A stretch of DNA of 64,000 nt. It comes from Hyalangium minutum (GTDB lineage: Bacteria; Myxococcota; Myxococcia; Myxococcales; Myxococcaceae). The notes beneath the pieces were generated by a model. The model worked only from the letters and a program-made list of their open reading frames with translations, was not told where the DNA came from and ran no database searches. The translations under genes were made by a program, and so were the position numbers. The DNA lies in contig NZ_JMCB01000009.1 in NCBI RefSeq assembly GCF_000737315.1, forward strand, positions 264,373 through 328,372. The letters are read 5' to 3'. This document shows, piece by piece, positions 9,485-33,794 of the stretch; the first letter of the stretch is position 1; each line of letters begins with the position of its first letter.

Positions 9485-9976
9485 ATGTCCCTCTCCACCT
9501 TGTGCCAGCGCTGTGGGCTCTGCTGCGACGGGAACCTGTTCTCGTCGCTGCCGTTGCGCCGCTCTGAGGTGGAGCCAATGCGGCGGCTCTCACTACCCGT
9601 GGTGGAGCGGACAGATGGAACGCCGGGGATCGAGCAACGCTGTGCGGCGTTGGATGGGCGGTGCTGCACGGTGTACGCGGAGCGTCCCGAGGCCTGCCGC
9701 CGCTACCGCTGCCACCTGCTGACGGCGGCGGCCGAAGGCGAGGTCTCAGTGGAGGAGGCACTGGGAGTGGTGGATGAGGCTCACGCGCGCATCCGAGCCG
9801 TCGAAGCCGCCCTACCCCTGGAGCGCCTGGGTTCTCCCCAAGCGGTGCTACAGCGTGCGAGACACGAAGACCAACCGGAAAACGGCGGTCCCCTGCCCCG
9901 CGAGACGCAGGAACTCTGGAATCAGGCGGAGAGCCATCTCGACCGCCACTTCCGAGGCCGACACCGCCGGATGTGA
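9485..9976 (+). CDS. YkgJ/UPF0153 family cysteine-cluster protein
   Basis: CQRCGLCC ... C ... CTVYAERPEACRRYRC. Confidence 0.88.
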   Translation: MSLSTLCQRCGLCCDGNLFSSLPLRRSEVEPMRRLSLPVVERTDGTPGIEQRCAALDGRCCTVYAERPEACRRYRCHLLTAAAEGEVSVEEALGVVDEAHARIRAVEAALPLERLGSPQAVLQRARHEDQPENGGPLPRETQELWNQAESHLDRHFRGRHRRM

Positions 9977-10127
9977 ACATGTCATTGCAGGTGCATCGCC
10001 TGCGTCACAACTCAGCAACATGCGCTGCGGATAATTTCTCCCCAGGCTAGTTGGTCACGATGTCGCATTCATCACTGCGGCGAATGGCATTCGCGCAGAG
10101 TAACGATAAGCCAAGTTGAGGTGGACA

Positions 10128-13100
10128 TCATCTCCACAACTCTTCCGGAATCCATGAGCGCCCCCAGTCCTTCAACTCTTTGGCGCCTCTTGGCCCTAGC
10201 ACACGATCCGGGAAAGGCGTGGGGTCGTCCGGCGAATTTCCCCAGAAATAGTAAGGGACCACATCAAGTAGTAAATGCAGAGCAGACCCTTGATCGGATC
10301 CAAAATTATATGTCCCTATATTAGCCGGATCCGTTACAAGCTGCCCATCCCTGAAGACAACCTCGCAGTGTCCATTGGGAGAGATAAATTTCTTGTTTCT
10401 CTCGTTCCCCAGCCCGTGCTGATGATAGACCGCTTTATCGGCAGGCACTGGAATCCAGCTTTTCGAGGCGAACTCATAAGACACGACACGATTATACTGA
10501 TTCCTATTATAATGTAGATCCTTCGCGATGACTATCCCCACAGCAGCCACGATAGCCCCAATCGGGACGGCAAAAAGACCAGACGGATCTACGTGCATGT
10601 GCGGCTGATTTGCCACGTATACATAAAAATTGGTGTCACCACCTGCAAAGCGAATAGGATCCTTGGTGGTCCACCTGCCTGTCTCGGCATCGTAGTCTCT
10701 AGCCCCAAAGCGGGTGAGTTTCGTGTCCCTGTCGTAAAGCCCCCCTGCAAAACCAAAGGGTTGGAAGCCTGGGTTGGAGTCAGCAAGCACGTTGCCCCAA
10801 ACGTCGTAGTCCAGTCGCTGAGCCACATTTCCATTGGCGATATCCACCACGAGGCGGGGGCTGCCTAGGTGATCCGATATGATACGGTAAGTGGTTCCCC
10901 CCTTGACCATATAATCGGGTGAGTGGCCTTGAGTGGCATACACGAAACGGGACACCACTTGATTGCTGCTATTCAACTCAGCAATCACTCGCAACTGCCC
11001 ATCATAGAGAAAACCTTGAGTGAGAGCGCCATTCACCATCTTGCCCACTCTTCGGCTCTGCGCATCCACTACGTACGCAATCCGTGTTCCGTTAGGAAGC
11101 GTGGCTGAGTGGAGGTTGCCCAAGGAGTCATACACATAAGTGGTGGATTGGGTCCCCACCTGCTTGCTCTGCAAATCTCCGCTGGGCCCATAGGTGTAGG
11201 TCGCATTACCAAACGTTAGCAACCGGTCCTGAGCATCGTAGGAGGCGGTTCGAGTTACACCCCCTACGACAAGTGCGGTGCGGTTGCCATTACCCGCCCC
11301 CCCGTTGTCGTAAGTGGCGTGGGAAATAACGGTACCGTCCTCTTGCAAATCCTCCAGTCTTCCTGCTGCGTCATACGTATAGACGTAGGTATGAGTCGTG
11401 CCCTGCACCGTCTCGAACTTACGATCAATGCGCCCCACGGCATCCCTGCGTAGTTGCACTGAGTAGAGGGATACGCTACCCCACGAGGTAGAAAGGCTTT
11501 CAATCTCCCCATAGGCATTGGGAACAATCGTAGTGGACACTTGCCCCAGAGTGGTGTCGGTAAGCACGCCATTCGTAGGACTGCGCACAAGCACCATGCT
11601 GCCAGCCTGTTTCATCAGCCCATCCTCGTCGTAGGCGTACACCACCGGGTTGGCGCCATTTATCGAAAGAGAGAAGGGGCGGAAGAACGCGTCATAGTTA
11701 TAGGAGACACTCCCGCTCACCCCTGTACTCCACGTCACCTGCTTAAGCAGTGCCCCGTCATACACATAGTTGAGGCTGGCCCCTTGCGAGTCTGTCAGCG
11801 ATTGAAGGTACCCACTCACGGGGTAGTAGACGGCCTGCAGTGTGCGAGCACTGTATCGACTGCTGCTCGGAGGAGTAGCCGTGAGGATCTGCAAGCGCCC
11901 TTTCTTGGACGTAGCATTATCCTCGTAGAAGGCCTGCACATCCGCCCCATCCGGATACGTAGACTGCTTCCACTGCCTGTCCACATTGTACTCCGAGTGG
12001 GTGTGTACGCGGGGCACGCCCGTGAGGCTGGGAGGGGTGTAATCCTCCTCCGCATCCGTCGGCGTGTAGGTAAACGAGTGTGCGGGTTGTCCTGAGGGCA
12101 CTAGGGTCTTCAAATTACCGTTGGCGTCGTAGTCGAAGTTCACCTGCCGGTTGCCCGGCAGCGCCTGCCCTCGCACCCGGCCTGCCAAATCATAGGAGAA
12201 GCTTGCAGTGCGGCCGAGTGCATCGGTCACCGTGTTCAAATATCCCTCGGGCTTATAGGTAAATGTGGAACTGCGGGTCCCCTGGGCGAGCAGCCTCAAC
12301 TGCCCTTCCGTGTCATAGTCATACGTCACCGGCAATATCCCTGGGACCTCCACCTTCACCACCTTGCCCTTGTCGTCATAGGTGGTCGTGACCTGTTTCC
12401 TCATAGGGCTCTGCTGAGTGAGTTTGCGCGTCGAGGCCTCGTACGTGAGGGTGGTGGTGAGCCCATTCACCGTCAGCACGTCCGTAAGCGTGGACAGGCT
12501 CAGCACGTCTTGTGGGTTGGTGAGTGTCACCGTGCGGCTGTGGCTGAAGTTTTGGGTCAGCCCACTGGGCAACTTCACCGTCTGGGAGCTCACCAGCGGA
12601 ACCTGCATCCCAAAGCGCGCATCCGGCCCCTCCACTGTGGTCACCAGTGTCCCATCCGCCGCAGTGACGGCAGTGGTGCCATTGGAGTTTCGCAGCGTCG
12701 TGGACACCTGGCCCGCTGCCCCCGTGAGGGTGCGCTGCTGCTCACCGGAGGAAAGGTTCTGCACCGCATACGTCGTGGTGCGGCCCATGGCAGTGCTTAC
12801 TGCCACGTTGTATCCGTTGGCGGTCTCGGTCCGAGCCAGAGCCTTGAATCCGCCCCCGGGCTGGTTGTCCTTCTTCAGCCTCCCATCCGGCTCATACTCG
12901 AACGTGTGCAAGCCTCCTCGAGGATCCTTGAGCGACGTCAAGAGACCACCCGCAGTATGAGCCAGTTCGATTGTCTCCGAGGCGGGATTCGTGACGGAAG
13001 ACAGATAGCCATTGCCATCCAGCCCCAACGTGGTGCGCTGGCCATGAGGCGCCACAATGGTCAGGGGCTTTCCCGAAGCATCCCGCTCCACCCGAGAGAT

Positions 13101-16100
13101 CAACCCATCCTCGTCCTTCACGGTCATCAACCGCCCAGCTTCGTCGTAGCCGAACTCGAAGCGCACCGACTTCGTCAGCGCGTCCAACGTCCGCAAGTGA
13201 CGCCCGCTGGAGTTGAAGACATAGACCTCTCCTCCATCCTCAGAGGGAATGATCAGGTCCTCGGAGCCAAACCCAGGCAGCGAAGAACTCACCTTGCGGA
13301 TGCGCTGACCCGACCATTCCGAGATGAACAGGCTCCCCTCTGGGCTGAGAGCCAAGCCACGAGGCGTATGGACCTGGGCCTGAGCCACAGGCCCCCCACT
13401 TCCACCCGAAGCGGGAAACCCCGTCCCCGTCACCGTGGTGATGATGCCATCGGGGCTCACTTTGCGGATGCGATGGTTCCCTGCATCAGCGATGAACAGA
13501 GTGCCACTCAGGTCAACCGCAATCCCTCGGGGCTCAAGCAACCGAGCCTGCGTGGCCGGCCCGCCATCTCCGCTGTAGCCAGGACTCGACGTCCCCGCCA
13601 CGGTGGTGATGATGCCGTGAGGGCTCACCTTACGAACACGGTGATTTCCTGTATCGGCAATCCAGAGATTTCCCGCTGAATCCAGCGCGATCTTCTGCGG
13701 GAGGTTCAGCCGCGCCTGGGTGGCCGACCCACCATCGCCACTGAATCCAGAAGCGCACTTCCCGACAGCCGTTGTGATCACCCCATCCGGACCTACCTTC
13801 CGGATGCGGTGATCATCCGCAATGAAGAGGCTTCCATCGCTTCCCAGCGCGATTCCCTGGGGGCCATACAGTCGTGCTTGCGTGGCGGGCCCACCATTTC
13901 CGCTGTACCCCCGGTTCCCAGTGCCCACCACGGTGGTGATGATCCCCTGAGAGTTGACCTTCCGGATGCTGAAGTTCCCCGTATCGACAATGAACAGGTT
14001 GTTCTCCGCATCCACCGCGATGTCTTGCGGAGACCGGAACTGGGCCTGAGTCGCGCTCCCACCATCTCCGCTGTAGCCCGGCACTCCGGTTCCAGCGACG
14101 GTCGTGATCGTCCCAGCCGGGCTCACCTTGCGGATACGATGATTCGCACTGTCCACAATGAAGAGGCTGCCATCCCGGCCGACCGCGATCCCTTCAGGCG
14201 ACAAGAGCTGGGACTGCGTCGCGGGCCCTCCATCCCCTCCAGAGCCCGGCACGCCTGTTCCAGCGACGGTCGTGATGACGCGCTGATTGAGGTCCAATGA
14301 GCTGCGGCGCTGCCCATACCCCAGATAGAGGACCTTCCCCATGGCGTCATAGGCGTGCTGGACATCGAGGGTCCATCCTCCCAGCCCCTGCGACGAAGAC
14401 TTGAACGTCCCCAGACTGCTCTCCCAATCCTGCCACAGCGTCATCTCACGCGTGTCTTGAGCAGCCGTGAAGGGGATACCCGAAATCCGTCCGAAGGCCT
14501 GCCCAAACTCCGCAGGCTGTTGGTAGATGAGCGAGTAGACATAGCCAACGCGAACCTTCGCGGGCCACTCCCCTTGCAAGACGCGCCCATACGCGTCCTT
14601 CCCATCCCACTCGAAGGTGTATTGCTGATTCACGGCGGCGGGGAACGTGTGCGTAAACCGCTGCCCAGCAATCTCCACCTCCAGCACCATCCGCCTGAGA
14701 CTGGCGGGCAGAGAGGCGCCGCTCAGGGGAACCTTCAGCCGGTAGTTCGTCTTCCGCCCCGGCACCCGGTCGCTCCTGTAATGCAAGCCGAACGGAGCAC
14801 CCACGAGCTCAATGGCTTCCCCCAAGGTCTGGGTCTGGCACTCGATGATCGACCCGCAGACGGCATCGGGCTTCTCCTCGGGCTTCTCCGCCTGAGGAGG
14901 TGACTGAATGGGCGCCTCTGCATCCAGGGGCGGACCGTAAGGCCAGTTACAATCCCACGGCGTGAAGTGGACGATGGGGGTGCGCCAAAGCGTCTTCCCC
15001 GCCGGGTACAGCCGCCCCAACTGCTGCAGTTCATCATCCAGGATGCCCAGGGGCACCAGCACATCAGGCCCGTCCGCGATCCCATCCCCATTCACATCCA
15101 ACACGGCCACGTTCGCATTGATGCCGAGGATCTTCACCACACGGCCGTTGTCCGAGGGCTTCCACACCCCAGACCTCCTGTCGTAGTAGCCCGCCGGCAC
15201 CACGCTCCCCACCGGGAAGTTCAGGAAGTTGTCCACGTACAGCGGCACCGGCTGCGTGAAGCGGACCTCCACGGCCCCGGCGGCCTGGGCCTCGTCCACG
15301 CTCAGCTCCACCGCATAGGTGTAGCCGCTGGTGGGCGGCAGATCTCCCGGCATCGCGTCCGGCCCTCGCTCTCCCACGGTGTACTCAGTGGCGCGCACGT
15401 GCCCCGTGGAGAGCGTCTGCGTGCTCCCATCGGGCAGCTCCATGCTCACCTGGGTGTTGGGAGGAAAGAGCAGGGTCGCCCGCCGTGTCCCGTCCGCGTC
15501 CGTAACGGGAGCGCCTTGCGCCACCTGCATCCCCGTGCTGCCCCCACCAAACTGCACTGGGGTCACCTGGGCATCGGCGCCCACCAGCACCACATCCTCG
15601 AGCCAGGCGTAGTTCTGCCAGGCCGGTTGCTCCTGGCGCTGAGAGGGCATGTACCCCGCCAGTTCGTACTGCAAGGTGAGCGGCACGCCTCCATTCACGG
15701 CCATGTCGAACATGCCGTTGGCTCGCGTCAGCGTGGCCCCAAACTCCGGATGGCCCAGCACGGACACCTTCACCCCTACCAGGGGGTTGCCCTCTCTCCC
15801 CTTCACGTGTCCGCGAAGCACCGCCACCCGCTTCGGGTCAATCGTCCCCTCGGCAACCCCTGTCTGGATCGCATGGGGGCCCGTGTAGAGAAACGCGGTG
15901 GCTTCGATGAACGGCGTTACCGCCGTCTCACTCACGGGCGTTACCACCTCTTCCAGTTCTGGACGCACCGTTACATGGAGCGTGGCTTCCGCCGGATTGC
16001 CAGCGGTGTCCTCCACCCGGGCCACCAGCGTGAGTGCCCCGGCGGCCAGCGTCACGGTCCCCTGCGCCCCCCTCTCCCCAGCGGAGAGCTGAGAGGAGAG

Positions 16101-16346
16101 GTCCTGCCCATTCACCAGCAGCCGGAAAGAGCCAGGCGCCACCCCCGAGGGATCGTCATAGGTCAGTGCGATGGTCTGGACGGTGCCATGGAGCGTGCTT
16201 CCCTCCTCGGGGCTCGTGAAGACCAAGGACGGTGGCGTCTCGTCCTTCGGGCCGGAGAGGGGCGGGTCATCCGCACAGCCTCCCAGCCATAGCGTCCCCG
16301 CGACCATCCACCACCCGAGAATGAACCGCAGACTTGAACGTTGCAT
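10128..16346 (-). CDS. teneurin-like RHS/YD-repeat lipoprotein with NHL propeller and C-terminal toxin-like tip (2072 aa)
   Basis: Lipobox LGGC, Ig domain, and teneurin-type segments VLRGHV..LVGVKV..TLTRANGMFDMAVNGG and YTFEWDGKDAYGR...VRVGYVY. Then six NHL repeats, YD repeats, and RHS core end PFGFAGGLYD...RDYD..TGRWTTKDP...DPSGL. Confidence 0.92.
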   Translation of the reverse strand: MQRSSLRFILGWWMVAGTLWLGGCADDPPLSGPKDETPPSLVFTSPEEGSTLHGTVQTIALTYDDPSGVAPGSFRLLVNGQDLSSQLSAGERGAQGTVTLAAGALTLVARVEDTAGNPAEATLHVTVRPELEEVVTPVSETAVTPFIEATAFLYTGPHAIQTGVAEGTIDPKRVAVLRGHVKGREGNPLVGVKVSVLGHPEFGATLTRANGMFDMAVNGGVPLTLQYELAGYMPSQRQEQPAWQNYAWLEDVVLVGADAQVTPVQFGGGSTGMQVAQGAPVTDADGTRRATLLFPPNTQVSMELPDGSTQTLSTGHVRATEYTVGERGPDAMPGDLPPTSGYTYAVELSVDEAQAAGAVEVRFTQPVPLYVDNFLNFPVGSVVPAGYYDRRSGVWKPSDNGRVVKILGINANVAVLDVNGDGIADGPDVLVPLGILDDELQQLGRLYPAGKTLWRTPIVHFTPWDCNWPYGPPLDAEAPIQSPPQAEKPEEKPDAVCGSIIECQTQTLGEAIELVGAPFGLHYRSDRVPGRKTNYRLKVPLSGASLPASLRRMVLEVEIAGQRFTHTFPAAVNQQYTFEWDGKDAYGRVLQGEWPAKVRVGYVYSLIYQQPAEFGQAFGRISGIPFTAAQDTREMTLWQDWESSLGTFKSSSQGLGGWTLDVQHAYDAMGKVLYLGYGQRRSSLDLNQRVITTVAGTGVPGSGGDGGPATQSQLLSPEGIAVGRDGSLFIVDSANHRIRKVSPAGTITTVAGTGVPGYSGDGGSATQAQFRSPQDIAVDAENNLFIVDTGNFSIRKVNSQGIITTVVGTGNRGYSGNGGPATQARLYGPQGIALGSDGSLFIADDHRIRKVGPDGVITTAVGKCASGFSGDGGSATQARLNLPQKIALDSAGNLWIADTGNHRVRKVSPHGIITTVAGTSSPGYSGDGGPATQARLLEPRGIAVDLSGTLFIADAGNHRIRKVSPDGIITTVTGTGFPASGGSGGPVAQAQVHTPRGLALSPEGSLFISEWSGQRIRKVSSSLPGFGSEDLIIPSEDGGEVYVFNSSGRHLRTLDALTKSVRFEFGYDEAGRLMTVKDEDGLISRVERDASGKPLTIVAPHGQRTTLGLDGNGYLSSVTNPASETIELAHTAGGLLTSLKDPRGGLHTFEYEPDGRLKKDNQPGGGFKALARTETANGYNVAVSTAMGRTTTYAVQNLSSGEQQRTLTGAAGQVSTTLRNSNGTTAVTAADGTLVTTVEGPDARFGMQVPLVSSQTVKLPSGLTQNFSHSRTVTLTNPQDVLSLSTLTDVLTVNGLTTTLTYEASTRKLTQQSPMRKQVTTTYDDKGKVVKVEVPGILPVTYDYDTEGQLRLLAQGTRSSTFTYKPEGYLNTVTDALGRTASFSYDLAGRVRGQALPGNRQVNFDYDANGNLKTLVPSGQPAHSFTYTPTDAEEDYTPPSLTGVPRVHTHSEYNVDRQWKQSTYPDGADVQAFYEDNATSKKGRLQILTATPPSSSRYSARTLQAVYYPVSGYLQSLTDSQGASLNYVYDGALLKQVTWSTGVSGSVSYNYDAFFRPFSLSINGANPVVYAYDEDGLMKQAGSMVLVRSPTNGVLTDTTLGQVSTTIVPNAYGEIESLSTSWGSVSLYSVQLRRDAVGRIDRKFETVQGTTHTYVYTYDAAGRLEDLQEDGTVISHATYDNGGAGNGNRTALVVGGVTRTASYDAQDRLLTFGNATYTYGPSGDLQSKQVGTQSTTYVYDSLGNLHSATLPNGTRIAYVVDAQSRRVGKMVNGALTQGFLYDGQLRVIAELNSSNQVVSRFVYATQGHSPDYMVKGGTTYRIISDHLGSPRLVVDIANGNVAQRLDYDVWGNVLADSNPGFQPFGFAGGLYDRDTKLTRFGARDYDAETGRWTTKDPIRFAGGDTNFYVYVANQPHMHVDPSGLFAVPIGAIVAAVGIVIAKDLHYNRNQYNRVVSYEFASKSWIPVPADKAVYHQHGLGNERNKKFISPNGHCEVVFRDGQLVTDPANIGTYNFGSDQGSALHLLLDVVPYYFWGNSPDDPTPFPDRVLGPRGAKELKDWGRSWIPEELWR
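13287..14280 (-). repeat. six intragenic NHL repeats (about 56 aa each)
   Basis: Six copies of ITTVAGTG..G.SGDGG.ATQA.L..P.GIA.....LFI.D..NHRIRKV. Confidence 0.9.
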
Positions 16347-16447
16347 GAGCGTTCCCCAACAAGCATCAAATCAGAGCGGGTGCCTGCGCAGTGCCCCCTG
16401 GCGGAAAGACGCCTTGAAGCGAGCACCACGCGGTCCCACTGCCCATA

Positions 16448-18859
16448 TCAGTCAACACACTCGAGCCGCACCGTCACCGTCACCCTGGCCGTGTCCGTAG
16501 CGCCACTTCCATTGGAGACGGTGTAGAGAAAGCTCATGTTGCCGAGAAAGTTTGGCGCGGGGGTGAAGCGCAGCACACCTCCGCTGAGGCTGACCGTTCC
16601 GCTGGCCGGCTGAGTCACGGAGGTGATGATGAGGGTCCCCGACGCCGAGCTGTCATTGGCCAGCACGTTCAGCACCGTGGGCCCGCTGTCATCCGCCACC
16701 GTGAAGGCGTCATTTCCGGCATGGAGCACGCTGTTCACCGTCACCGTCATCCACACCGCGGCCGTCGCGGATCCACCCGTCCCATCCGAGACCGTGTAGG
16801 TAAAATACGTGGTGCCAACGAAGGTCTCCGCGGGGGTGAAGCGCACCACGCCTCCAGAGAGCGTCACGGTGCCGCCCGTCGGCTGCGTCACCGCTACGAT
16901 GGTCAAGGTCTCCCCCAAATCCGGGGCCGATGAGTCATTGGCCAAGAGGTTCAACTCCGTGGCCTCGCTGTCCTCCATGACAGAGAAGCTGTCGTCTCGG
17001 GCTGTCGGAGGGTCGTTCACGGGCGTCACGGTCACGGTGACCGCAGCTGTATCAATCCCTCCATTCCCGTCGGAGAGGGTGTAGGTGAAGTTCGTGGTGC
17101 CGAAGAAGTCTGGAGCAGCGGTGAAGAAGAGCGTGCCGCCACTGACGAAGACCGAGCCGTTCGCGGGTTGAGTCGCTGAAGTGACGGTGCGCGTCCCCGT
17201 CGCAGAGGCATCATTGGCAAGCACATCCAGTGCAGCAGTCCCGCTGTCCTCGGCCACCGTGAAGGCGTCGTCCACCGCATTCGTCGCTACCGCCGTCACC
17301 GTCACTGTCACCGTGGCCGTATCGGTTCCTCCGATGCCGTCCGAGATGATGTAGGTGAAGTTCGTGGTGCCGACAAAGTTCGTCGCGGGGGTAAAGCGCA
17401 GCACGCCTCCTGTGAGGCTCACCGTGCCATTGGCGGGCTGGGTCGCCGCAGTCAGAGTGATTGTCCCCGATGCCGAGCTGTCATTGGCCAGTACGTCCAG
17501 CACGGTGGCTCCGCCATTCCGGGCCACGGTGAAGCTGTCGTCCACCGCATCCGTCACTGCCGCCAGCCCCACTCTCACGGTCACCAGAGCCGTGTCGGTC
17601 CCTCCTGAGCCATCCGAGAGGGTGTAGGAGAAGCTCGTGGTACCGGAGAAGTTAGACGCTGGGGTGAAGTTCACCATGCCCCCAGTGAGGACCACCGTCG
17701 CATTCGCCGGCTGTGTGACGGCACTGACGGAGATTGTCTCCCCCTGATCTGGAGCGGCGGTGTCATTGGCCAGAACATCGAGCGGAGTCGTCCCGCTGTT
17801 CTGGGCGACCGAGAACGTATCGTTCACCGCGTCCGGTGGGTCGTTCACGGGCGTTACCGTCACCGTCACCGAGGCGGTACTGGTCCCTCCACTTCCATCG
17901 GAGACCGTATAAGTGAAGCCCGTGATGCCAAAGAAGTTAGAGGCGGGGGTGAAGCGCACGACACCGCCACTGAGGGTCACCGTGCCGTTAAAGGGTTGAG
18001 TGACGGCCGTGACGGTGAGCGTCCCCGACGACGTGCTGTCGTTGGCCAGCACGTCGATCGCCGTTGGACCGCTGTCCTCAAGTACGGTCAAGGTGTCGTC
18101 GGTGGCCACCGGTCCGACGGTGTCGACCGTGAAGGTGTTGGCGTTCGACTGCGAGCCGGTGTTGCCTACTTCGTCGGTCGCAGTGGCTTGCACCACGTGA
18201 GAGCCATCCACCAGTAGCCCCGGGGAGGTGAAGCTCCAGTTGCCTGAGCCATCCACCGTCGTGCTGCCCACCACGGTCCCATCCACGATGATGACGACGG
18301 TGCTGCTGGGCTCAGCTGTGCCTGAGTAGGTCGGCGTCGTGTCGTTGATTCGCGAGCCGTTGGCCGGCAAGTAGATGGCCGGGGCGGCTGGAGGGGTGGT
18401 GTCCACCGTGAAGGTATTGGGCGTGGACTCAGGGCTGGTATTCCCTTGGGCGTCGGCAGCCGTGGCCCGTACCTCGTGAATCCCATCCGTCAGTGGCGTG
18501 GTCGAGGTGAAGGCCCAGGTACCTCCAGTCACTGCCGTAGATGTACCCAGGGACACACCGTCCACCAAGACGGAGACGGTGACCGTATTGCCTTGCTCAG
18601 TAGTGCCCGAGTAGGTCGGCGTCGGGTCACTCGTTCGCGAGCCGTTGGCGGGGGTAACCACCACAGGAGCAGGCGGAGCGGCGATGATGGCCGTAACGCT
18701 GTTGCCCTGACGTGCCGCCGCGGCATTCGCCGCGGGAGGAGTTTGGGTCTCTTGGCTACAAGAGAGACTCAGCGCTCCCAGCATGACTGGCAGCACCAGG
18801 AGTTTTGCAAAGACGGCGACCTTCGTCTGAAGGCATGGATCCACAGATCCCCCTCTCAC
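16448..18859 (-). CDS. Ig-like/cadherin-like repeat surface adhesin lipoprotein
   Basis: Lipobox LSLSC, two bacterial Ig domains (NGS...PTYSGT...VDG), six A.DD.F.V...DVLAND repeats. Start uncertain (18859, 18844 or 18784). Confidence 0.85.
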   Translation of the reverse strand: MRGGSVDPCLQTKVAVFAKLLVLPVMLGALSLSCSQETQTPPAANAAAARQGNSVTAIIAAPPAPVVVTPANGSRTSDPTPTYSGTTEQGNTVTVSVLVDGVSLGTSTAVTGGTWAFTSTTPLTDGIHEVRATAADAQGNTSPESTPNTFTVDTTPPAAPAIYLPANGSRINDTTPTYSGTAEPSSTVVIIVDGTVVGSTTVDGSGNWSFTSPGLLVDGSHVVQATATDEVGNTGSQSNANTFTVDTVGPVATDDTLTVLEDSGPTAIDVLANDSTSSGTLTVTAVTQPFNGTVTLSGGVVRFTPASNFFGITGFTYTVSDGSGGTSTASVTVTVTPVNDPPDAVNDTFSVAQNSGTTPLDVLANDTAAPDQGETISVSAVTQPANATVVLTGGMVNFTPASNFSGTTSFSYTLSDGSGGTDTALVTVRVGLAAVTDAVDDSFTVARNGGATVLDVLANDSSASGTITLTAATQPANGTVSLTGGVLRFTPATNFVGTTNFTYIISDGIGGTDTATVTVTVTAVATNAVDDAFTVAEDSGTAALDVLANDASATGTRTVTSATQPANGSVFVSGGTLFFTAAPDFFGTTNFTYTLSDGNGGIDTAAVTVTVTPVNDPPTARDDSFSVMEDSEATELNLLANDSSAPDLGETLTIVAVTQPTGGTVTLSGGVVRFTPAETFVGTTYFTYTVSDGTGGSATAAVWMTVTVNSVLHAGNDAFTVADDSGPTVLNVLANDSSASGTLIITSVTQPASGTVSLSGGVLRFTPAPNFLGNMSFLYTVSNGSGATDTARVTVTVRLECVD
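16466..18115 (-). repeat. six tandem cadherin-like (Big_9-type) domain repeats, about 95 aa each
   Basis: Recurrent DD.F.V..DSG.T.LDVLAND..TQP..GTV...GG..RFTPA.NF.G...FTY.VSDG.GG..TA.VTV. Confidence 0.88.
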
Positions 18860-18945
18860 GATAAGCTGACTCGCTTACCGCCAGCTTAGATCACCTCTCA
18901 TGGATGTGGTGCGTAATCATGGCAGGAATTTCGAAGGGGATAGGA

Positions 18946-19836
18946 ATGACACGGGTCCTGGTCGTCGGTGGCGTGGCGTTCAACACGATGATCCAGCTCG
19001 AGCAGTTCCCGGAGCGGCGCTCCCAGACCGTCTTCAGCCGGGGCTACCACGAGACCCTCGGAGAGACCGGGGCTGGCAAGGCGTTGAACCTTCGCAAGCT
19101 GGGCTTCGACGTCTCCCTCCATGGCCTCGTAGGTGATGACCTGTACGGCCACCGCATCGAAGAGCGGCTCCAGCAAGAGGGCATCCACTTCCTCCGCGAT
19201 CTCGATCCGCGCGGCACCGAGCGCCACGTCAACCTCATGAACGCCGAGGGCGGCCGCATCTCCATCTACATGGCCTATGCCACCTTCGAGCCCCAGCTCG
19301 ACTTGAGCCACCTCGAAGCCCTCATTCCCTCGCACGACTACGTCGTGCTCAACATCATCAACTACGCGCGCCGCCTCATCCCTGCCGTGAAGCGATCTGG
19401 CAAAGAGCTCTGGTGCGACATCCACGACTTCGATGGCCGGAATGAGTACCACCGCGACTTCATCGAAGCCGCTGACTGCATCTTCATGAGCTCCGACTCC
19501 ATGAGCGACTACCGCCCGTTCATGCAGTACCTCGTGAGCCAGGGAAAGAAGCTCGTGGTCTGCACCCACGGCCGCCACGGCTCCACCGCCCTCACCTCTG
19601 ACAACCGCTGGATCGAGACTCCCATCGTCCCCGGCTACACCGTCCGCGACACCAACGGCGCCGGCGATGCCTTCTTCGCGGGCTTCCTCTTCGGCCACTC
19701 CCGGCAATACCCCCTCAAGCAGTGCCTGCGGCTCGCCAGCATCACGGGAGCCCTGTGCGTCACCTCGGAAGAGCTGGCCTCCCCCACCCTCTCCTCTGAG
19801 TTGCTGGAGTCGGAATACCGCAAGCACTTCGGCTGA
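18946..19836 (+). CDS. PfkB family carbohydrate kinase
   Basis: GETGAGKALNL, VCTHGRHGS, and the signature DTNGAGDAFFAGF. Confidence 0.92.
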   Translation: MTRVLVVGGVAFNTMIQLEQFPERRSQTVFSRGYHETLGETGAGKALNLRKLGFDVSLHGLVGDDLYGHRIEERLQQEGIHFLRDLDPRGTERHVNLMNAEGGRISIYMAYATFEPQLDLSHLEALIPSHDYVVLNIINYARRLIPAVKRSGKELWCDIHDFDGRNEYHRDFIEAADCIFMSSDSMSDYRPFMQYLVSQGKKLVVCTHGRHGSTALTSDNRWIETPIVPGYTVRDTNGAGDAFFAGFLFGHSRQYPLKQCLRLASITGALCVTSEELASPTLSSELLESEYRKHFG

Positions 19837-26139: not shown

Positions 26140-26463
26140 ATGGGCACGATGAAGTTCGAGGTCCCCCACAGCCTGCCGAAGGACGAGGCGAAGAAGCGCG
26201 TCGAGCAGCTGCTGCACTACTGGGGCAGCAAGTACGGCGTGAAGGCGGACTGGGCCGGCGATGGGGCGAAGCTCAACGGCAAGGTGATGGGCATCAACCT
26301 GGATGCCAGCTTCGTCATCACCGAGAAGGCCGTGTCGGGAGAGGGCACGGACCCCGGCATGCTGCTGCGAGGCCAGGCCAAGGCCTACCTGCAGAAGAAG
26401 TTCGCCGCGGTGCTCGATCCGAGCAAGAGCGTGGCCGACATCAAGAGCACGATGGACAGCTAG
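26140..26463 (+). CDS. polyhydroxyalkanoic acid system family protein
   Basis: [16 protein letters not shown] pattern, about 100 aa, RBS AGGAG. Confidence 0.7.
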
Positions 26464-28217
26464 TGTCCTTCGTCCTCCAGCGCTGTCAGCGCGTAGCGCG
26501 CCACCCGGGCAATGGCCTCCGGTGAGTCCGGCATGTCCGGGTAGTGGCCCGCCAGAGGCCGCTGGGGGAAGCGCAGTTGCGCGATGGCGTTGCGGTAGCT
26601 GCGCCGGGCGCCATCGCGATCCTGGGTGCGCTCCTGCACCTGGGCCAGCAGGTAGTGGCCAATGGCCAGCGTGGGCTCCAGGAAGAGGGCCTTGCTGAAC
26701 TCGGAGCGCGCCTCGGCCAACTGCCCGGCCTGGAGCGCCGCCACGCCTCCGAAGACCCGGGCCTCCACGCACAGAGGCTCGCGGGCGAGCGCTTGCGCGA
26801 AGGCCTCGCGCGCCTCGACGATGTGGCCGGTGAGTGAGTACAGGTTGCCCAGCGTCAACAGCCCGTCCAGGTGGCCCGGCTCATCCACCAGCAGCTTCTC
26901 CACGTCCTTGATGGCGGTGGTGAAGTCGCTCTGCATCATCTTCCGCACGGCCTGATTCAGGCGCTCGGCGGGCGGCAGCCTCTTGGCGCCTCCAGGCACT
27001 TCGGTGGCGCGCAGCACCCGGGGCTCGGGAGAGCCCACCGCGGGCATCTCCAGCGTGAGGCGCGCGGGCCGCACCGGCTCGGGCGTGTTCCGCATCTCCG
27101 GGTGAGGGTTCAGCTTGGCGTTGGCGGCCAGGCGTTCGCGAATGGTGGTCAGCGGATCGTGGGTGACCGCCGCGGGCTTCACCGGGCTCAGCGTGTCCGT
27201 ACCGGCCGACGGGGTCTTCGAGAACGCGATGGGGGCCGGAGTCTCCATCCCCCGGGGCTTCGAGGGGAGCCCGGTGCTCGGAATGGGCGCGGGAGTGGTC
27301 AGCGGCGCGGCCGTGGTGCCAGCCGTGGGCACGGGCGCGGGCGTCAGCGACAGGGGCTGCAGCGTCATCCGGCTGCCCTTCTGCTCCATCAGGGGCCGCC
27401 GGTAGACGAACGCGCCATCCACCTCGATCATCTCGAAGCGGTCGTACACCTTGAAGAGGCTCTCCGAGTACCCCAGGAAGAGCAGCCCGCCCGGGCGCAG
27501 CGCTTGGAGGAACCGATCCATCAGCCCGCGGATGGTGGGCAGATCGAAGTAGATGATGACGTTGCGGCAGAGGATCAGATCCAGCGAGCCGGGCGCCACC
27601 ATGTCCGTGAAGGACGGCGCCGCGAGGTTCAGACCGTCGAAGCGGATGTACTCCTTGATGTTCGGCTGGATCTCGAGCCCTTCCTCCATGGGCCGGAAGA
27701 AGCGCTCGAGCCGCTCTGCGGACATGTTGCCCGCGCGCCGCACGGAGAAGCGCCCCACCTTCGCGGCCTCCACGGCGGCCAGGTTCAGATCCGTGGCCCA
27801 GATGTCCACCTCGCCGGGCAGCGCGCCCAGCTCCGCCATCACCATGGCCATGCTGTAGGGCTCCTCGCCCGTAGCGCACCCGGCGGACCAGATGTAGACC
27901 TTGCGCACCTCACGCCGGGCCTTGGCCAGCAGCTGAGGGAGGATGAAGCGCTCCAGCGCGCGGAACTGCTTGGGATCGCGGAAGAACTCCGTGTGCCCCA
28001 CTGTCACCAGCGGCAGCAGTGCGCGCAGTTCCTGCTCGCCGCCCACTTCCCGCAGCCGCTGCACGTAGAGTTCAGGGTCCGTGAGGCCCACGGCGGGCAT
28101 GCGCGTGGACAGCGCCAGCCGGAGGCTGTGGAAACCATCCGGAGTGATCTTCAGTCCGGCCCGCTCCAACAGAAGGGCGGAGAGCTGCTGTAGGGCCTTC
28201 TGGCTCACGTTCAGCAA
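26460..28217 (-). CDS. frzF: CheR-type methyltransferase with TPR repeats (FrzF)
   Basis: [37 protein letters not shown]-terminal TPRs. TTG start overlaps the frzG stop. Confidence 0.93.
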
Positions 28218-29221
28218 GTCTCCACCCAATCAACGAGGGTCGGCGCAATCCGGTCCAGCGGAAGGATCTCCTCGGCGGCACCCATCTGCACCGCCTCGCG
28301 AGGCATCCCATACACAGCACACGTCTCCGCGTTCTGCGCGATGGTCCTCCCCCCTCGATCGCGGATCTCTTTCAAACCTCGCGCCCCATCGCGCCCCATG
28401 CCCGTGAGGATGACGCCGATGCACCGGCGCCCGAAGGACTCCGCCGCCGAGGATAGCAGCAGATCGCACGAAGGCCGGAAGCCTCGTACCGGGGGTCGGG
28501 TGTCCAGTACCAGCTTTCCATCCGGGCGCACCAGCAGGTGGCCCCCCGACGGCGCGATGTACACGGCCCCCTTCTCCATCATCTGCTCGTGGGTCGCCTC
28601 CAGCACCTTCAGTGGAGTCTCCGTGGACAGCCAGTGCGCCAACCCCTCGGTGAAGCCATCACTGATGTGCTGGCAGATCGCCACCGGCGCCGGGAAGTTC
28701 CGGGGCATCATCCGCAAGATCTGGGAGATCGCCTTGGGCCCGCCCAGCGAGGCGGCAATGGCCACCAGCGGGAACGGCACCTCGGGTCCCTCGTGGGCGG
28801 CCAGCCGCTTGAGCTTGCCCTGGACGTGACGCACCACGCGGACCTGCGCCAGCACCGTCAGCCGGCGCGCCATGGCGTGCCAGTACTCGGGGCCGGGCGA
28901 GGCGGGACGCTCGGCCACATCCAGCGCCCCGAGCGCCAGGGCCCGGAAGGCCTCCTCGCGCGACAGCATGCCCGGATCCAGTGCGAGGATGGGCGTGGGC
29001 CGCTCCGCCATGATGCGCTCGATGGCGTCCAGCGCGTCCACCGACGTGAGATCGATGAGCAGCACGTCCGGGATCTGCTCCCGGACGGTGCTCAGGGCCT
29101 CACTGAAGCCGCACTCGCCGGCGCTCGACAGCGCGTCGCTGTCGAAGAGCGTGCGCGACATGATGCGGAGGCCCCCGCCCACGAGCAGCACCCGGTATGC
29201 GAGCCCTGGAGCATTGCGCAC
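28211..29221 (-). CDS. frzG: CheB-type methylesterase (FrzG)
   Basis: [46 protein letters not shown]. Confidence 0.93.
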
Positions 29222-29237
29222 GCGGTCCCCTAGCCTC

Positions 29238-31547
29238 TTACGTCAGCCGTTCGATGGTCTGAGCCAGGATCTCTACGCCCAGCTCGCCCTTGACGAGGTA
29301 GCCGTCCGCTCCCGCCTCCAGGCCGCGCCGCTTGTCCTCGGGTGAAGCCAGCGAGGACAGGATGATGACCGGAATGCGCGCCACCGCGGGCGTCGTCTTC
29401 AGCCGCCGCGTGAGCGAGAACCCGTCCATCTTCGGCATCTGCACGTCCGTGAGGATCAGATCGTACGTGTTGACCTGCACCTTGGCGTAGGCCTCCTCGC
29501 CGTCCTGGGCCTCCTCCACCGAGTGGCCCAGCGCCTTGACCAGTGCACCCTCCGTGGCGCGAGCAATGGGCGAGTCATCCACCAGCAGCACTCGCAGCCG
29601 GTTGGAGGACTTCTGCTGGGTGACGGGGCGGGCCATGCGGCGCACCTCGGCCATGATGTCCGGCACGTGGCAGAGCACGGCGACGCGGCCGTCCTCGAGC
29701 GCCGCAGTGCCCGCGATGAAGGGAGCTCCCTTGAGGAAGTCCCCGCCGCAGGGCTTCACGGCCACCTCGCGCTCGTCCACGAAGCCGTCCACCACCAGGG
29801 CGGCGTTGTCCTCGCCGTGGCGGACCACCACGGCGGGCGGCTTCTCCATTCGGTTGCCACCGTTGACGCCCAGCAGCGGCCCCATGGCCACCAGAGCGAT
29901 GGGCTTCTCGCGGTGCTTCACGGCCAGGGTACCGAAGACCTCCATCCGGTCCTCGGGCTTCACGCGCGTCACCGCCACCACGTCCGCCGCGGGGATGCCG
30001 TAGACGTCATCGCCCAGGCGCACCAGCAGCACCTTCATGAGCGCCAGCGACTGAGGCAGGCGCAGGGTGATGGTGGTGCCGCGGCCGATGCGGCTGGCCA
30101 CGCTCACCGAGCCGCCCAGCGTCTCCACCTTGCGCTTCACCACGTCCATGCCCACGCCGCGGCCGGAGATCTCGTTCACCTGCTCGCGGGTGGAGAAGCC
30201 GGGGCGGAAGATGAGCTCCATGGCCTCGCGCTCGGACATCGCGGCGGCTTGGGGCTGCGTGAGCAGCCGCCGGTTGACGGCCACCGTCTTCAGGCGCTCT
30301 GGATCGATGCCCCGGCCGTCGTCCTCCACCTGGATGTGGAGCATGTCGCCGTCGGCGCGGACGCGGATGCGGACCTTGCCCATCGGCGCCTTGCCCAGCT
30401 GCGTGCGGGCATCTGGCGTCTCCAAGCCGTGGTCCACCGCGTTGCGCAGCAGGTGCACCAGCGCATCGCGAACGTCCGACAGCATGGAGCGGTCCACGCC
30501 CATGTCGGAGTTCTCGATGACGAGGTCCACTTCCTTGCCCTGATTGCGCGCCAGCTCGCGCATGGCGCGAGGGAAAGCCTCGAACACCGTGGACAACGGC
30601 ACGAGCCGCGCCTCGGCTACCGTGTCCGCCATCTTGGCCAGGTTGCCGTGCAGCGTGTTCATGCCGTCGTCGTTGCGGCGCAAGAACCGGAAGGCGTCGT
30701 CCCGCAGCGCGTGCAGGTCGCTCTCGATGCCCTCCAGGTGGGCCCGCACCTCTGGCGAGAGCGTCATCTCCTCGCCCACCTTGAGGAAGCGATCGCTCAG
30801 GTGGGAGAAGCGCTCGAAGAGCTGAGCGGTCTCCAGGCCTCGGAGCCGGCCGCGCGCGCTCTCCACCAGCAGATCGCCCGCGAGCACGCCGAGCGAGTCG
30901 AGGATCTCGACGTTCACGCGAATGCTGCGGTCGGCCACGGTCGGCTTGGCGGCCTTCTCCGCCGCCGGAGCCTCGTCCTCGGGCTTGGCCTGCGCCGGAG
31001 CCACGACCGGAGCCGAAGCCTTGGCGGGAGACTGTGCCGCGGTGGCGCGGCTCAGGGACTCCGCCGAAGCCATGGCTGCGGACACAGGAGCCGCGGCAGG
31101 CGCGGGCTTCGCGGCAGGCGCGGGCTTCGCGGCCTGCGGCTTGTTGCCCAGGGGCGGAGCGGGATGGCCGGAGGCCTCCGCGAGCGCCTTGACCATCTCC
31201 TCGCTGCCCTGGGTGCCGGTGTGAGCGCCAGGCAGGTCTTCGATCAGATCCGAGAGGACGTCACAGGCGCGCAGGAGCAGATCGGTGGCCACCTCGGTCG
31301 CCGTCTTGCCCTCACGCTCGGCACGCAGCACGTCCTCGGCGGCGTGCGCCAGCTGGCCGATGGCGGCGAGCCCCAGCATGCGGGCCTCGCCCTTCATCGT
31401 GTGCAGCTCGCGCGCGACATCGTCCGCCGCCTGCTCCGCATTCTCCTTCTCGAGGTCCAGGACCCCGAGCTGGATCTTCTGCAGCCGGTCGGCGGTGACC
31501 TCCTGGAACTTCTTCAGGAGGGATTTCTTGAGCGCCTCGGTATCCAT
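29238..31547 (-). CDS. frzE: CheA-CheY hybrid kinase (FrzE)
   Basis: Hpt ELHTMKGEA, HLLRNAVDHG, DDGRGID, SGRGVGMDVV, CheW domain, C-terminal REC (VDDSPIAR...DVQMP). Confidence 0.95.
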   Translation of the reverse strand: MDTEALKKSLLKKFQEVTADRLQKIQLGVLDLEKENAEQAADDVARELHTMKGEARMLGLAAIGQLAHAAEDVLRAEREGKTATEVATDLLLRACDVLSDLIEDLPGAHTGTQGSEEMVKALAEASGHPAPPLGNKPQAAKPAPAAKPAPAAAPVSAAMASAESLSRATAAQSPAKASAPVVAPAQAKPEDEAPAAEKAAKPTVADRSIRVNVEILDSLGVLAGDLLVESARGRLRGLETAQLFERFSHLSDRFLKVGEEMTLSPEVRAHLEGIESDLHALRDDAFRFLRRNDDGMNTLHGNLAKMADTVAEARLVPLSTVFEAFPRAMRELARNQGKEVDLVIENSDMGVDRSMLSDVRDALVHLLRNAVDHGLETPDARTQLGKAPMGKVRIRVRADGDMLHIQVEDDGRGIDPERLKTVAVNRRLLTQPQAAAMSEREAMELIFRPGFSTREQVNEISGRGVGMDVVKRKVETLGGSVSVASRIGRGTTITLRLPQSLALMKVLLVRLGDDVYGIPAADVVAVTRVKPEDRMEVFGTLAVKHREKPIALVAMGPLLGVNGGNRMEKPPAVVVRHGEDNAALVVDGFVDEREVAVKPCGGDFLKGAPFIAGTAALEDGRVAVLCHVPDIMAEVRRMARPVTQQKSSNRLRVLLVDDSPIARATEGALVKALGHSVEEAQDGEEAYAKVQVNTYDLILTDVQMPKMDGFSLTRRLKTTPAVARIPVIILSSLASPEDKRRGLEAGADGYLVKGELGVEILAQTIERLT
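31093..31128 (-). repeat. 18-bp tandem duplication in the FrzE linker (AKPAPA x2)
   Basis: GCGGCAGGCGCGGGCTTC twice in tandem. Confidence 0.8.
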
Positions 31548-31609
31548 GGCCGGTGGGGCTCCGGGGGGCAAAGGCAGCCGGGGGAGCTACCTGAGCCCTC
31601 CGAAGAGTC

Positions 31610-32875
31610 TCAGTCCGCCTTGAAGCGCTTGATGAGCTCGGCGAGCCGGCCCGCAAGCTGCGAGAGTTCCGCGGACGCGCCCGTGGCCTGCTTGGAGGCC
31701 TGGGTCGTCTGCCGGGTCACGTCCTCGATCTCGGCCATGGAGGCCACCACCTGCTCGGTGGCCGTGCGCTGCTGCTGCGTGGCGAGGTTGATGACGCGCG
31801 CCGCGTCGCTGGTCTCCTGAACACCGGCGAGGATGCCCTCGACGGCCTGCGCGGCCACGGCGCCCAGCTTCTCGCCGGACTCGGTGGCCACCTTGGAGGC
31901 GTCCGCCGCGCTGCCCGCGTTGGCGGTGGCCTCGCGGATCTCCGTGATCAGGCTCTTGATCTCCTTGGTGGAGTCCAGGACGTTCTCCGCCAGCCGCCGC
32001 ATCTCCGCCGCGACGATGGAGAAGCCCTTGCCGGCCTCACCGGCGCGGCTGCCCTCGAGCGCCGCGTTGAGCGCGAGCAGGTCCGAGCGGTCGGCGATCT
32101 CGTCGATCACCTCCACCACGGTGCCGATGCGCTCCACGCGCTTGGACAGCTTGGCGATGGAGTCCGCCACGGCGATCCCGTCGCTGCGGATCTGCTGCAT
32201 GGCCTGGATGAACTCGGCGATGGCGCCCCGGCCCGCGCGGGCGGCACCCAGCGTCTCCTCGGCCACGCGCGCCACGGCGCCGGCGTTCTCGGCGATCTGC
32301 GCGGAGGCGTGCTTCAGCTCCTCCATGGTCGCCGTCGTCTCGTGGATGGCGGCGGCCTGTTCAGTAGAGGACGTCTCGTGCTGGGTGGAGGCCGCGAGCA
32401 CCTGGTTGGCGGACGAGGACAGGCGCAGGGCCGCCTCGTTCATCTCGCGCACGAAGGTGCGCAGGGTCTCGATGACCTTGCCAAAGCCCTCGAGCAGCGG
32501 GGCCAGCTGAGGATCCTCGGTGGAGGTGTTCCAGCGGGACAGGTCGCCCTCGCGCACCAGGGCGATGAGCGAGTCCAGCGCCTGATCAATCTCCTGAGCC
32601 GCCACCTGCTTGCGGTGCTCGGACTCGGAGAAGCGCTCCAGGACCTGGTTGAGCAGTCCGCCCAGCTCGCCGTACTCGCCGCCGACGGTCTCCGGCACGA
32701 CGCGGGCCTGGAGGTTTCCCGCCAGCACCGAGCGCAGGGTGTCCGAGAGCGCCTTGAGCGCCAGGCCATTCCCGTTCGGGGCGGGAGCGGTGGTCTTCGC
32801 CGCCGTCTTCGAGGCCGCGGGCTTCTTCGTTCCGCGGCTCTTCGCCGGCTTGTCGTTCGTGGTGTCCAAAGCCAT
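31610..32875 (-). CDS. frzCD: cytoplasmic methyl-accepting chemotaxis protein (FrzCD)
   Basis: No TM helix, basic N-terminal tail, HAMP-like region, IDEIADRSDLLALNAALEGSRAGEAGKGFSIVA. I recognise it as close to M. xanthus FrzCD. Confidence 0.95.
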   Translation of the reverse strand: MALDTTNDKPAKSRGTKKPAASKTAAKTTAPAPNGNGLALKALSDTLRSVLAGNLQARVVPETVGGEYGELGGLLNQVLERFSESEHRKQVAAQEIDQALDSLIALVREGDLSRWNTSTEDPQLAPLLEGFGKVIETLRTFVREMNEAALRLSSSANQVLAASTQHETSSTEQAAAIHETTATMEELKHASAQIAENAGAVARVAEETLGAARAGRGAIAEFIQAMQQIRSDGIAVADSIAKLSKRVERIGTVVEVIDEIADRSDLLALNAALEGSRAGEAGKGFSIVAAEMRRLAENVLDSTKEIKSLITEIREATANAGSAADASKVATESGEKLGAVAAQAVEGILAGVQETSDAARVINLATQQQRTATEQVVASMAEIEDVTRQTTQASKQATGASAELSQLAGRLAELIKRFKAD

Positions 32876-32880
32876 TGCTG

Positions 32881-33282
32881 TCAGTGCCTTCCTTGAGTCC
32901 TAGCGGTTTCGACCAAATCGATGAGCAACACGAGGCGGGTCTGATCCAGACACGCGCCGATGGTAAAGGGGGCGGCGTTCACGGCGGGCGGGAGCTGCCG
33001 CAGGTTCGCGATGAGGATGGGGCGCACGGCGTGCACCACATCCACCTTGAGGTGGGCCTCGCCCTGCGAGGTGGAGAAGACGAGCGCCCGCCGACCGCGG
33101 CGCAACTCACCCAGCGACGGCACGGAGAGATCCTCCGGCAGCGCGCGCTCGATGCGCAGCACCTGCGAGGCGTCCGTGCCGTAGAGCCGGTCGCCGATCT
33201 CGAAGAAGAGGACATCCACCTCGTCTTCGAGGCGCTGCTCCTGTTGTTCCTGCTCCTGCTCCTGCTCCTGCTGCAGCATCAT
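32881..33282 (-). CDS. frzB: CheW-like protein (FrzB)
   Basis: EVDVLFFEIGDRLYGTDASQVLRIER. ATGA coupling to frzA and position in the operon. Confidence 0.88.
   Translation of the reverse strand: MMLQQEQEQEQEQQEQRLEDEVDVLFFEIGDRLYGTDASQVLRIERALPEDLSVPSLGELRRGRRALVFSTSQGEAHLKVDVVHAVRPILIANLRQLPPAVNAAPFTIGACLDQTRLVLLIDLVETARTQGRH
33235..33273 (-). repeat. (CAGGAG)n hexamer tract encoding QEQEQEQQEQ at the FrzB N-terminus
   Basis: Plus strand reads ctgctc ctgttg ttcctg ctcctg ctcctg ctcctg ctg. Confidence 0.8.
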
Positions 33283-33794
33283 CGGGACACCGCCCGCTGC
33301 CGCGCCGTCTGGAGCAACTTGGAGAAGTTGAGCAGGTTGATGGTCTCCTCGGCGGTGGGCCCAGCCACCACGCCCAGCATGTGCTCGGTGGCGGCGTCCG
33401 CGCCCATGGGCGGCGGGAGGATGTCCGAGACGAGGATCTTCCTCAGGCCCAGCACGGTGTCGGCCACCACGCCAGCCACGTAGGTGCCGCTGACGCCCAC
33501 GAAGAGGCGAGTGCGCGGCATGATGCGCGCCTCGCCCTTGGCCAGGAAGCGCAGCAGATCCATGACGGGGAGCACCTCGCCCCGGTGGCCGGTGACGCCG
33601 AGCAGGAACGACGGAGCCCGGGGCAACGGCGTGAGGAGCCCGGCCCGAAGCACTTCGAGCACGTTCTCGCTCGGGACACCGAGGCGAAGGTTCCCTACAC
33701 GGAAGCAGAAGAACTCTTGCTCCGGCCGGGCCTGGGCCGAGACAGCGCGGGCGGGCGCGATCCGAAGCGCGCGTTGAAGGGGAGTCGAATTCAA
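33279..33794 (-). CDS. frzA: CheW coupling protein (FrzA)
   Basis: FFCFRVG..RLGVPSENVLEVLR, TPLPRAPSFLLGVTGHRGEVLPV. Confidence 0.93.
   Translation of the reverse strand: MNSTPLQRALRIAPARAVSAQARPEQEFFCFRVGNLRLGVPSENVLEVLRAGLLTPLPRAPSFLLGVTGHRGEVLPVMDLLRFLAKGEARIMPRTRLFVGVSGTYVAGVVADTVLGLRKILVSDILPPPMGADAATEHMLGVVAGPTAEETINLLNFSKLLQTARQRAVSR

Follow-up and report, generated by a model that had tools for sequence, protein, structure and literature searches.

What is the large gene at positions 10128–16346 (minus strand) of a 64-kb stretch of the Hyalangium minutum genome, and what might its product do to other cells? The stretch, called the window below, covers 64,000 nucleotides of contig NZ_JMCB01000009.1. 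The gene encodes a bacterial teneurin-like protein (TLP), and an exact-sequence look-up places it on JMCB01000009.1 of assembly GCA_000737315.1, from H. minutum DSM 14724. The protein is a member of the published TLP class of polymorphic toxins, and our overall best explanation, to which we give a probability of about 75%, is that it is the organism's single TLP and a lipoprotein-anchored polymorphic toxin of that class. Both the class and this very protein are already catalogued (Raoelijaona et al., Nat Commun 2026, PMC13018210). In that paper, Supplementary Data 1 and 2 list GCA_000737315.1 as H. minutum DSM 14724 with one TLP, and Supplementary Data 3 contains 'Hyalangium_minutum/1-2032', whose C-terminal domain (CTD) is identical to the CTD read here. 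What is added here is a start codon that yields a lipobox, the family of the CTD, the exported or membrane proteins encoded next to its relatives, the lack of a detectable immunity gene and a separate, adhesin-like gene upstream.

Bacterial TLPs were first reported by Jackson et al. in 2018 (PMC5851990). The later study (PMC13018210) describes them in 139 genomes from six phyla, with one in >20% of Myxococcota species; Gram-negative TLPs, those of Myxococcota included, are predicted lipoproteins exported by Sec and processed by signal peptidase II (Sec/SPII). The common architecture is BIG-TTR-TIP-FN-plug-NHL-YD-CTD, with TIP present in 96% of TLPs. Structures 9pt5 and 9ifo are of the Bacillus inaquosorum TLP (BiTLP), which cleaves itself at two sites, one in the FN-plug between G723 and S724 and one after L2144 (motif PxxxxDPxG, with R2103, D2116 and D2140), and a polymorphic CTD of ~15 kDa is enclosed in the shell. 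An immunity gene lies downstream of 'almost all' TLP genes. The paper states that delivery and release 'remain to be elucidated', and it found no dedicated delivery machinery. An earlier interpretation of the window from its letters alone (the sequence-only reading) thus rated the novelty of the locus too high: the class dates from 2018, and the 2026 study already covered Myxococcota lipoprotein TLPs, with this genome in its dataset.

The class assignment comes from profile matches, from sequence matches to solved structures and from a confident predicted fold. The hidden Markov models (HMMs) of PMC13018210 match the H. minutum genome at 9.4e-107, 1.4e-136 and 0. When the protein is searched against PDB sequences, 9pt5 and 9ifo come out on top with about 1497 bits over residues 81–1928; animal teneurins follow at E 1e-117 to 1e-78 (395 bits), and the Rhs proteins of type VI secretion systems (T6SS) match at 1e-24 or worse, with Rhs and Tc proteins scoring at most 89 bits. 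In order, the domains are signal peptide with lipobox, immunoglobulin-like (Ig-like) domain, TTR, TIP, FN-plug, six NHL repeats, YD shell, RHS core and a 148-aa CTD. The features of the gene are as follows; AF2 stands for AlphaFold2 and pLDDT for its predicted local distance difference test score.

10128–16346, minus strand: complete TLP gene, a 6219-bp open reading frame (ORF) of 2072 codons plus stop.
16275–16346, minus strand: signal peptide and lipobox LGGC, residues 1–24, with predicted lipidated Cys24 (PROSITE PS51257-type pattern match).
15963–16229, minus strand: Ig-like beta-sandwich, residues ~40–128 (strands at AF2 model positions 16–104, offset +24; block pLDDT 89–97).
15585–15839, minus strand: TTR_TEN1-4 domain (carboxypeptidase-regulatory-like), residues 170–254 (PF25020, E 3.9e-24).
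14937–15563, minus strand: TIP domain, a bacterial-type insert between TTR and FN-plug, residues ~262–469 (alignment with BiTLP).
14850–14855, minus strand: predicted N-terminal autocleavage site between G498 and S499, with Cys497 and Cys503 nearby (aligned with G723 and S724 of BiTLP).
14295–14828, minus strand: FN-plug, residues ~507–684, with the Pfam core at 537–605 (PF24329, 33.1 bits against a cutoff of 27.8).
13278–14279, minus strand: six-bladed NHL propeller, residues 690–1023 (PF25021 TEN_NHL, E 2.7e-52).
10656–13235, minus strand: YD-repeat shell, residues 1038–1897 (PF25023, E 1.2e-43).
10575–10808, minus strand: RHS-associated core, residues 1847–1924, ending in DPSGL at 1920–1924 (NCBIfam TIGR03696, E 4.8e-19).
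10131–10574, minus strand: 148-aa C-terminal domain after DPSGL, residues 1925–2072, a predicted toxin.

The NHL region can be read straight from the sequence as six tandem repeats of 54–56 aa, and the YD-shell match spans model positions 16–867 of 909 (852 positions). For the N-terminal part, an AF2 model of residues 25–689 was built on 60 homologs (pLDDT 89.7). It contains an Ig-like sandwich at ~40–128, TTR at ~174–248, a domain of ~200 aa at ~262–469, a loop of lower confidence and the FN-plug at ~507–684. In a Foldseek search with this model, the top matches are animal teneurins (E 1e-20), with the bacterial TLP structure 9ifo ranking just below them. A Pfam search gave no match to the Ig-like domain, which aligns in part to the BIG region of BiTLP. 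The ~200-aa TIP region aligns to BiTLP residues ~500–700, is highly conserved across the 60 homologs and has a pLDDT mostly of 82–98. A Pfam scan of the whole protein found no families beyond the teneurin, NHL and RHS sets, and no EGF, Tox-GHH or PAAR. The sequence-only reading had already named a complete teneurin-like protein of a myxobacterium with an LGGC lipobox, an Ig domain, carboxypeptidase-like and FN-plug segments, a six-bladed NHL propeller, a YD shell and an RHS core ending in DPSGL. Each of these parts is present, and two of the checks it proposed came out in its favour: the FN-plug, NHL and YD models match in that order, and the fold comparison points to teneurins. The one element missing from its list is the TIP domain.

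The protein therefore has what defines the class within one chain: FN-plug, NHL and YD, with TTR and TIP upstream, the RHS aspartyl motif, the Gly-Ser site and a CTD of ~15 kDa. A downstream immunity gene, the remaining hallmark, was not found at this locus. Domain order, Gly-Ser site, Arg/Asp/Asp spacing and CTD size are as in BiTLP. The two proteins differ at their ends: the H. minutum TLP has a Gram-negative lipoprotein anchor where the BiTLP kind has Gram-positive wall or S-layer modules; it has a single N-terminal Ig-like domain, with cadherin-like repeats in a separate gene; and it carries a CTD of another family with no immunity gene behind it. With the animal teneurins (chicken Ten2, 6fb3; human Ten4, 7bam; fly Ten-m, 8fia) it shares the superfold of TTR, FN-plug, six-bladed NHL and YD shell. 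Animal teneurins, however, have no DPxG cleavage motif, most lack TIP, and their C-terminus is threaded out of the shell to the ABD and Tox-GHH; the H. minutum TLP is instead a predicted cleaving toxin cage on a lipid anchor. Where metazoan teneurins have a type II transmembrane anchor, EGF domains and ABD plus Tox-GHH, we find a signal peptide and a cleavage motif.

The choice of start codon decides whether there is an anchor at all. The ORF is intact, and its ATG is the earliest start codon past the upstream stop, with GGGGA directly before it. The resulting N-terminus, MQRSSLRFILGWWMVAGTLWLGGC, has R3 and R7 in the n-region, the h-region FILGWWMVAGTLW and the lipobox LGGC24, which together make a predicted lipoprotein signal. 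The published protein, at 2032 aa, lacks the first 40 residues: it begins with the TTG codon of Leu41 and so has neither signal peptide nor lipobox (window 16224–16346, minus strand). We prefer the 2072-aa reading because it produces a canonical n-region, h-region and lipobox.

Both self-cleavage motifs are intact as well. In the FN-plug loop, DAVC497-G498-S499-IIEC503 aligns to C719...G723-S724-II of BiTLP, and G498 and S499 are each conserved at 90% or more in the alignment of 60 homologs. The RHS core motif reads R1883-x12-D1896(PIR)-x23-D1920(PSG)L1924, with P1915-HMHV-DPSG-L1924 at its end; the spacings of 13 and 24 are identical to those of R2103, D2116 and D2140 in BiTLP. The first DPx[G/L/R] motif may have Arg at its end (PMC13018210). 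From these motifs we infer cleavage after L1924 and between G498 and S499.

Pfam and NCBIfam searches with the CTD returned no match; faint resemblances to Glyco_hydro127C and LytU were put down to chance. AF2 predicts its fold with confidence (pLDDT 92.5); Foldseek searches of PDB and BFVD with the model gave no significant match, and the family profile has no match among PDB sequences. A word-index search retrieved one relative only, and an exhaustive profile search retrieved 1608 representative clusters at E<=1e-3 (678 at E<=1e-10). By sequence, then, the CTD is a member of a large predicted toxin family for which Pfam and NCBIfam hold no model, and we regard the domain as a genuine polymorphic-toxin module of unknown activity. 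The domain lies no more than 40 residues from the C-terminus in 118 of 134 full-length matches, and the scaffolds recognized among 55 longer CTD-bearing proteins are Rhs (20), DUF6531 (4), eCIS_core (3), MafB (1) and LXG (1). The same type occurs on another full TLP, P0136, and the alignment in PMC13018210 includes one further TLP with a CTD of the H. minutum type.

The family motifs run HYxRN ... YHxxG ... SPDGHxE ... TDPxNxGTYN ... HxxxDVxPYYxWGN, with conserved CTD positions H21, R24, N25, H51, N60, K62, G68, E71, D82, N85, T88 and N90, followed by H100-x3-D104, P107, Y108, G112 and N113. Every invariant or near-invariant position is intact in the H. minutum copy. Cys1994, which might pair with Cys497 or Cys503 in a disulfide as C2216 does with C719 in BiTLP, is conserved in the closest CTD relatives only. 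At the start of the domain lies FAVPIGAIVAAVGIVIA, a hydrophobic helix with a Kyte-Doolittle mean of 1.94 that none of the inspected relatives shares.

What lies next to the relatives gives a hint of where the CTD might act. In 27 metagenome loci fetched with a 7-sequence alignment, the next gene past the CTD relative, in those where the sequence runs on beyond its stop codon, usually encodes either a signal-peptide protein of 165–217 aa, often with a lipobox, or a small multi-pass membrane protein; an exported or membrane protein is found in ~16 of the 27. These candidate immunity proteins fall into at least four groups with no detectable kinship to one another, and a Pfam search of them found nothing. 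Immunity to a toxin with a periplasmic or membrane target is expected to come from exported or membrane proteins. We propose an envelope target for the CTD because the proteins downstream of its relatives are exported or membrane-bound; that it is an envelope-directed (metallo)hydrolase, as these neighbours and the His/His/Glu/His-x3-Asp set could be taken to mean, is a hypothesis only.

The gene's surroundings bear on both ends of the protein.

16448–18859, minus strand: 803-aa predicted lipoprotein with Big_13 and six Big_9/Cadherin_5/Cadherin_4 repeats (Pfam Big_9 E 5e-110).
9977–10127, no strand: 151-bp spacer from the TLP stop to the stop of a convergent CxxCxxCC-family gene, with no immunity ORF at the expected site.

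The upstream gene is co-oriented with the TLP gene, its product has the lipobox LSLSC, and the 101-bp gap to the TLP start holds no terminator-like site. Around the locus no consensus promoter or terminator was found, which is uninformative for a high-GC myxobacterium. In TLPs P0011, P0086 and P0024, Big_9-type repeats are fused N-terminal to TTR, and since other TLPs carry the same repeat types in this way, the gene at 16448–18859 is probably a split-off adhesin module. Base composition sets the pair apart: GC content is 0.54–0.65 in the two-gene block (9980–19000) against 0.68–0.70 in the flanks, and GC at third codon positions drops along the TLP gene from 0.80–0.92 at the 5' end to 0.51–0.54 in the CTD. 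The gradient and the low-GC block suggest horizontal acquisition, with the 3' module replaced by recombination.

Elsewhere in the window there is a chemosensory cluster at 26460–34790 (CheR-TPR, CheB, a 769-aa protein without Pfam match at the CheA position, a methyl-accepting chemotaxis protein, CheW and a response regulator). At 47327–49270 (minus strand) lies a gene for a 647-aa HARE-HTH plus Mrr_cat protein, restriction-endonuclease-like. The stretch 59525–63703 encodes a LysM plus Peptidase_C39_2 protein, then a CCP_MauG/MbnP pair (MbnH/MbnP-like) and, near the contig end, a DUF2381 protein.

How might such a protein work? In our preferred reading, the TLP would be exported and, through a lipid on Cys24, anchored to the outer membrane. 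Its RHS core would sever the CTD, which would remain inside the FN-plugged YD shell; at 148 aa, it is about the size that the shell cavity holds. On contact with another cell, the CTD would be released into the target, where it would most likely act in the cell envelope (periplasm or membrane). The 803-aa Big_9/cadherin-like lipoprotein would probably supply the adhesin module that other TLPs have fused at the N-terminus, and the 3' part of the TLP gene would have come by recombination from a donor of lower GC. The sequence-only reading had arrived at a surface-tethered cage with the NHL propeller as target receptor and delivery by cell contact; here, as in the published work, these roles are inferences.

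Several points weigh against reading the protein as an anchored toxin, most of them concerning immunity. Directly downstream of the TLP gene there is no immunity gene: the spacer of 151 bp leads straight to the stop of the convergent CxxCxxCC gene. When the candidate immunity groups from the 27 loci were compared with all six frames of the 64-kb window, matches stayed at chance level (best tblastn E 0.015; HMM E > 2). The published shell gave E. coli no protection in chimeras (PMC13018210), which leaves unexplained how a producer without an immunity gene would tolerate its toxin. The genes downstream of the CTD relatives in metagenomes are themselves only assumed to confer immunity, and they split into at least four groups unrelated to one another. 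Neither fold nor sequence links the CTD to a protein of known function, and any enzymatic activity is a guess. Finally, lipidation, surface exposure, autocleavage, toxicity and target of the H. minutum TLP are all predictions. Two small ORFs near the expected immunity site were considered as candidates and rejected, a 57-aa ORF at 9848–10021 (minus strand) and an 86-aa ORF at 9774–10034 (plus strand): both extend into the convergent gene at its 3' end, neither has a signal peptide or transmembrane segment, and neither matches a candidate group. To account for the gap, an immunity gene may lie elsewhere in the H. minutum genome, H. minutum may be intrinsically insensitive to the CTD, or the toxin may be directed at non-kin.

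The last two of these accounts can be joined into a bolder, tentative proposal that we consider doubtful as a whole. The interest would then lie in the CTD and not in the teneurin scaffold. The CTD would define a family absent from the libraries searched (at least 1600 clusters at 50% identity, on Rhs, TLP, eCIS, MafB and LXG scaffolds), with a confidently predicted fold unmatched in the PDB, that attacks the envelope; the H. minutum copy would have gained its unique leader helix and have no immunity gene; and the TLP would be a weapon against prey, or one delivered by vesicles or membrane exchange, with a producer that is intrinsically insensitive to it, and not half of a kin-discrimination pair.

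Myxobacteria have other toxins with which the anchored TLP should be compared. According to a review (PMC10433427), Rhs4 and Rhs5 of Myxococcus xanthus are large signal-peptide Rhs toxins that act in T6SS-independent kin discrimination. Like the TLP, they are myxobacterial, Sec-exported, T6SS-independent YD/RHS toxins, and they are thought to be located on the cell surface and to hand over a C-terminal toxin when cells touch. They differ in being ~4000 aa long, in lying in Mx-alpha prophages with immunity genes and in that a teneurin-type FN-plug and NHL are not reported for them; the TLP gene is chromosomal, amid housekeeping genes, and has no immunity gene. SitA resembles the TLP as a myxobacterial polymorphic toxin with a lipobox; unlike the TLP, it is small, has no YD shell and comes with sitI immunity genes.

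SitA suggests a different route. The TLP could be an outer-membrane lipoprotein of the inner leaflet that spreads by TraA/TraB outer-membrane exchange or in vesicles, as SitA does, and not a surface weapon with an NHL receptor. The lipobox is in place, PMC5562445 and PMC8546572 describe lipoprotein toxins being moved by myxobacterial outer-membrane exchange, the CTD relatives appear to act in the envelope, as would suit a toxin passed to the outer membrane or periplasm of a recipient, and the published TLP work (PMC13018210) names no dedicated delivery machinery. We nevertheless consider this route unlikely. Outer-membrane exchange targets kin, so an immunity gene should be required, and none was found; a protein of 2072 aa with adhesin-type domains suggests exposure, and the adhesin-like gene upstream suggests a function at the surface. 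No similarity to SitA was detected, in that Pfam gave only teneurin, NHL and RHS families and the N-terminal domains of SitA were not compared directly.

A second alternative takes the likeness to animal teneurins at face value, with the TLP mainly an adhesion or cell-cell recognition molecule and the CTD irrelevant or inactive. An inactive CTD would explain why no immunity gene was found, the Ig-like and NHL domains and the cadherin-like product of the neighbouring gene are all modules of the adhesion type, and PMC13018210 leaves room for a role in cell-to-cell communication. This is nonetheless quite unlikely: both autoprotease motifs and all family-conserved CTD residues are intact, and a CTD that appears recently imported, from a family found on many toxin scaffolds, marks an active polymorphic toxin that diversifies through exchange. 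A third possibility, that the TLP is an Rhs effector of a T6SS or forms the BC component of a Tc (ABC) toxin, with partner genes elsewhere in the genome, we dismiss as extremely improbable: a YD shell and RHS core are common to both groups, but the N-terminus is an SPII signal without any PAAR or prePAAR match, the architecture is FN-plug plus NHL in place of a TcB-type plug, the TLP and teneurin scores (~1497 and 395 bits) stand against at most 89 bits for Rhs and Tc proteins, and Pfam searches of the genes called in the 64-kb window gave no match for PAAR, VgrG, Hcp or Tc toxins, TcA-type genes included, just as the sequence-only reading had stated.

A full-protein scan of genome contigs returned mostly NHL-repeat proteins and no close ortholog; the closest relative found is in Archangium lansingense (locus L111, 10001–16208), with 58% identity in the N-terminal part. 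The A. lansingense TLP is split into ORFs of 1061 and 973 aa, has an unrelated, glycine-rich CTD resembling an outer-membrane protein and likewise lacks a small downstream gene. A few kb upstream of it are a gene with a faint Tox-REase-9 match and a TsiV-family gene. With the TTR-TIP-FN-plug region as query, at least 796 relatives at E<=1e-10 were found among the 8000 candidates scored (~45–58% identity), spread over many phyla in metagenomes (P0002–P0121). The 139 isolate genomes may greatly understate how common TLPs are in uncultured bacteria.

Bacterial TLPs matter as ancestors of the animal teneurins and as toxins whose means of delivery is still unknown. The H. minutum copy says nothing new about the class as such. 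Its lack of an immunity gene prompts the questions of what makes a producer tolerant of such a toxin and against whom it is aimed, and with a cultured type strain, a clear predicted lipoprotein anchor, a probable adhesin in a separate gene that could be deleted alone, no immunity gene and a CTD from a large family of unknown function, the H. minutum TLP is a usable test case.

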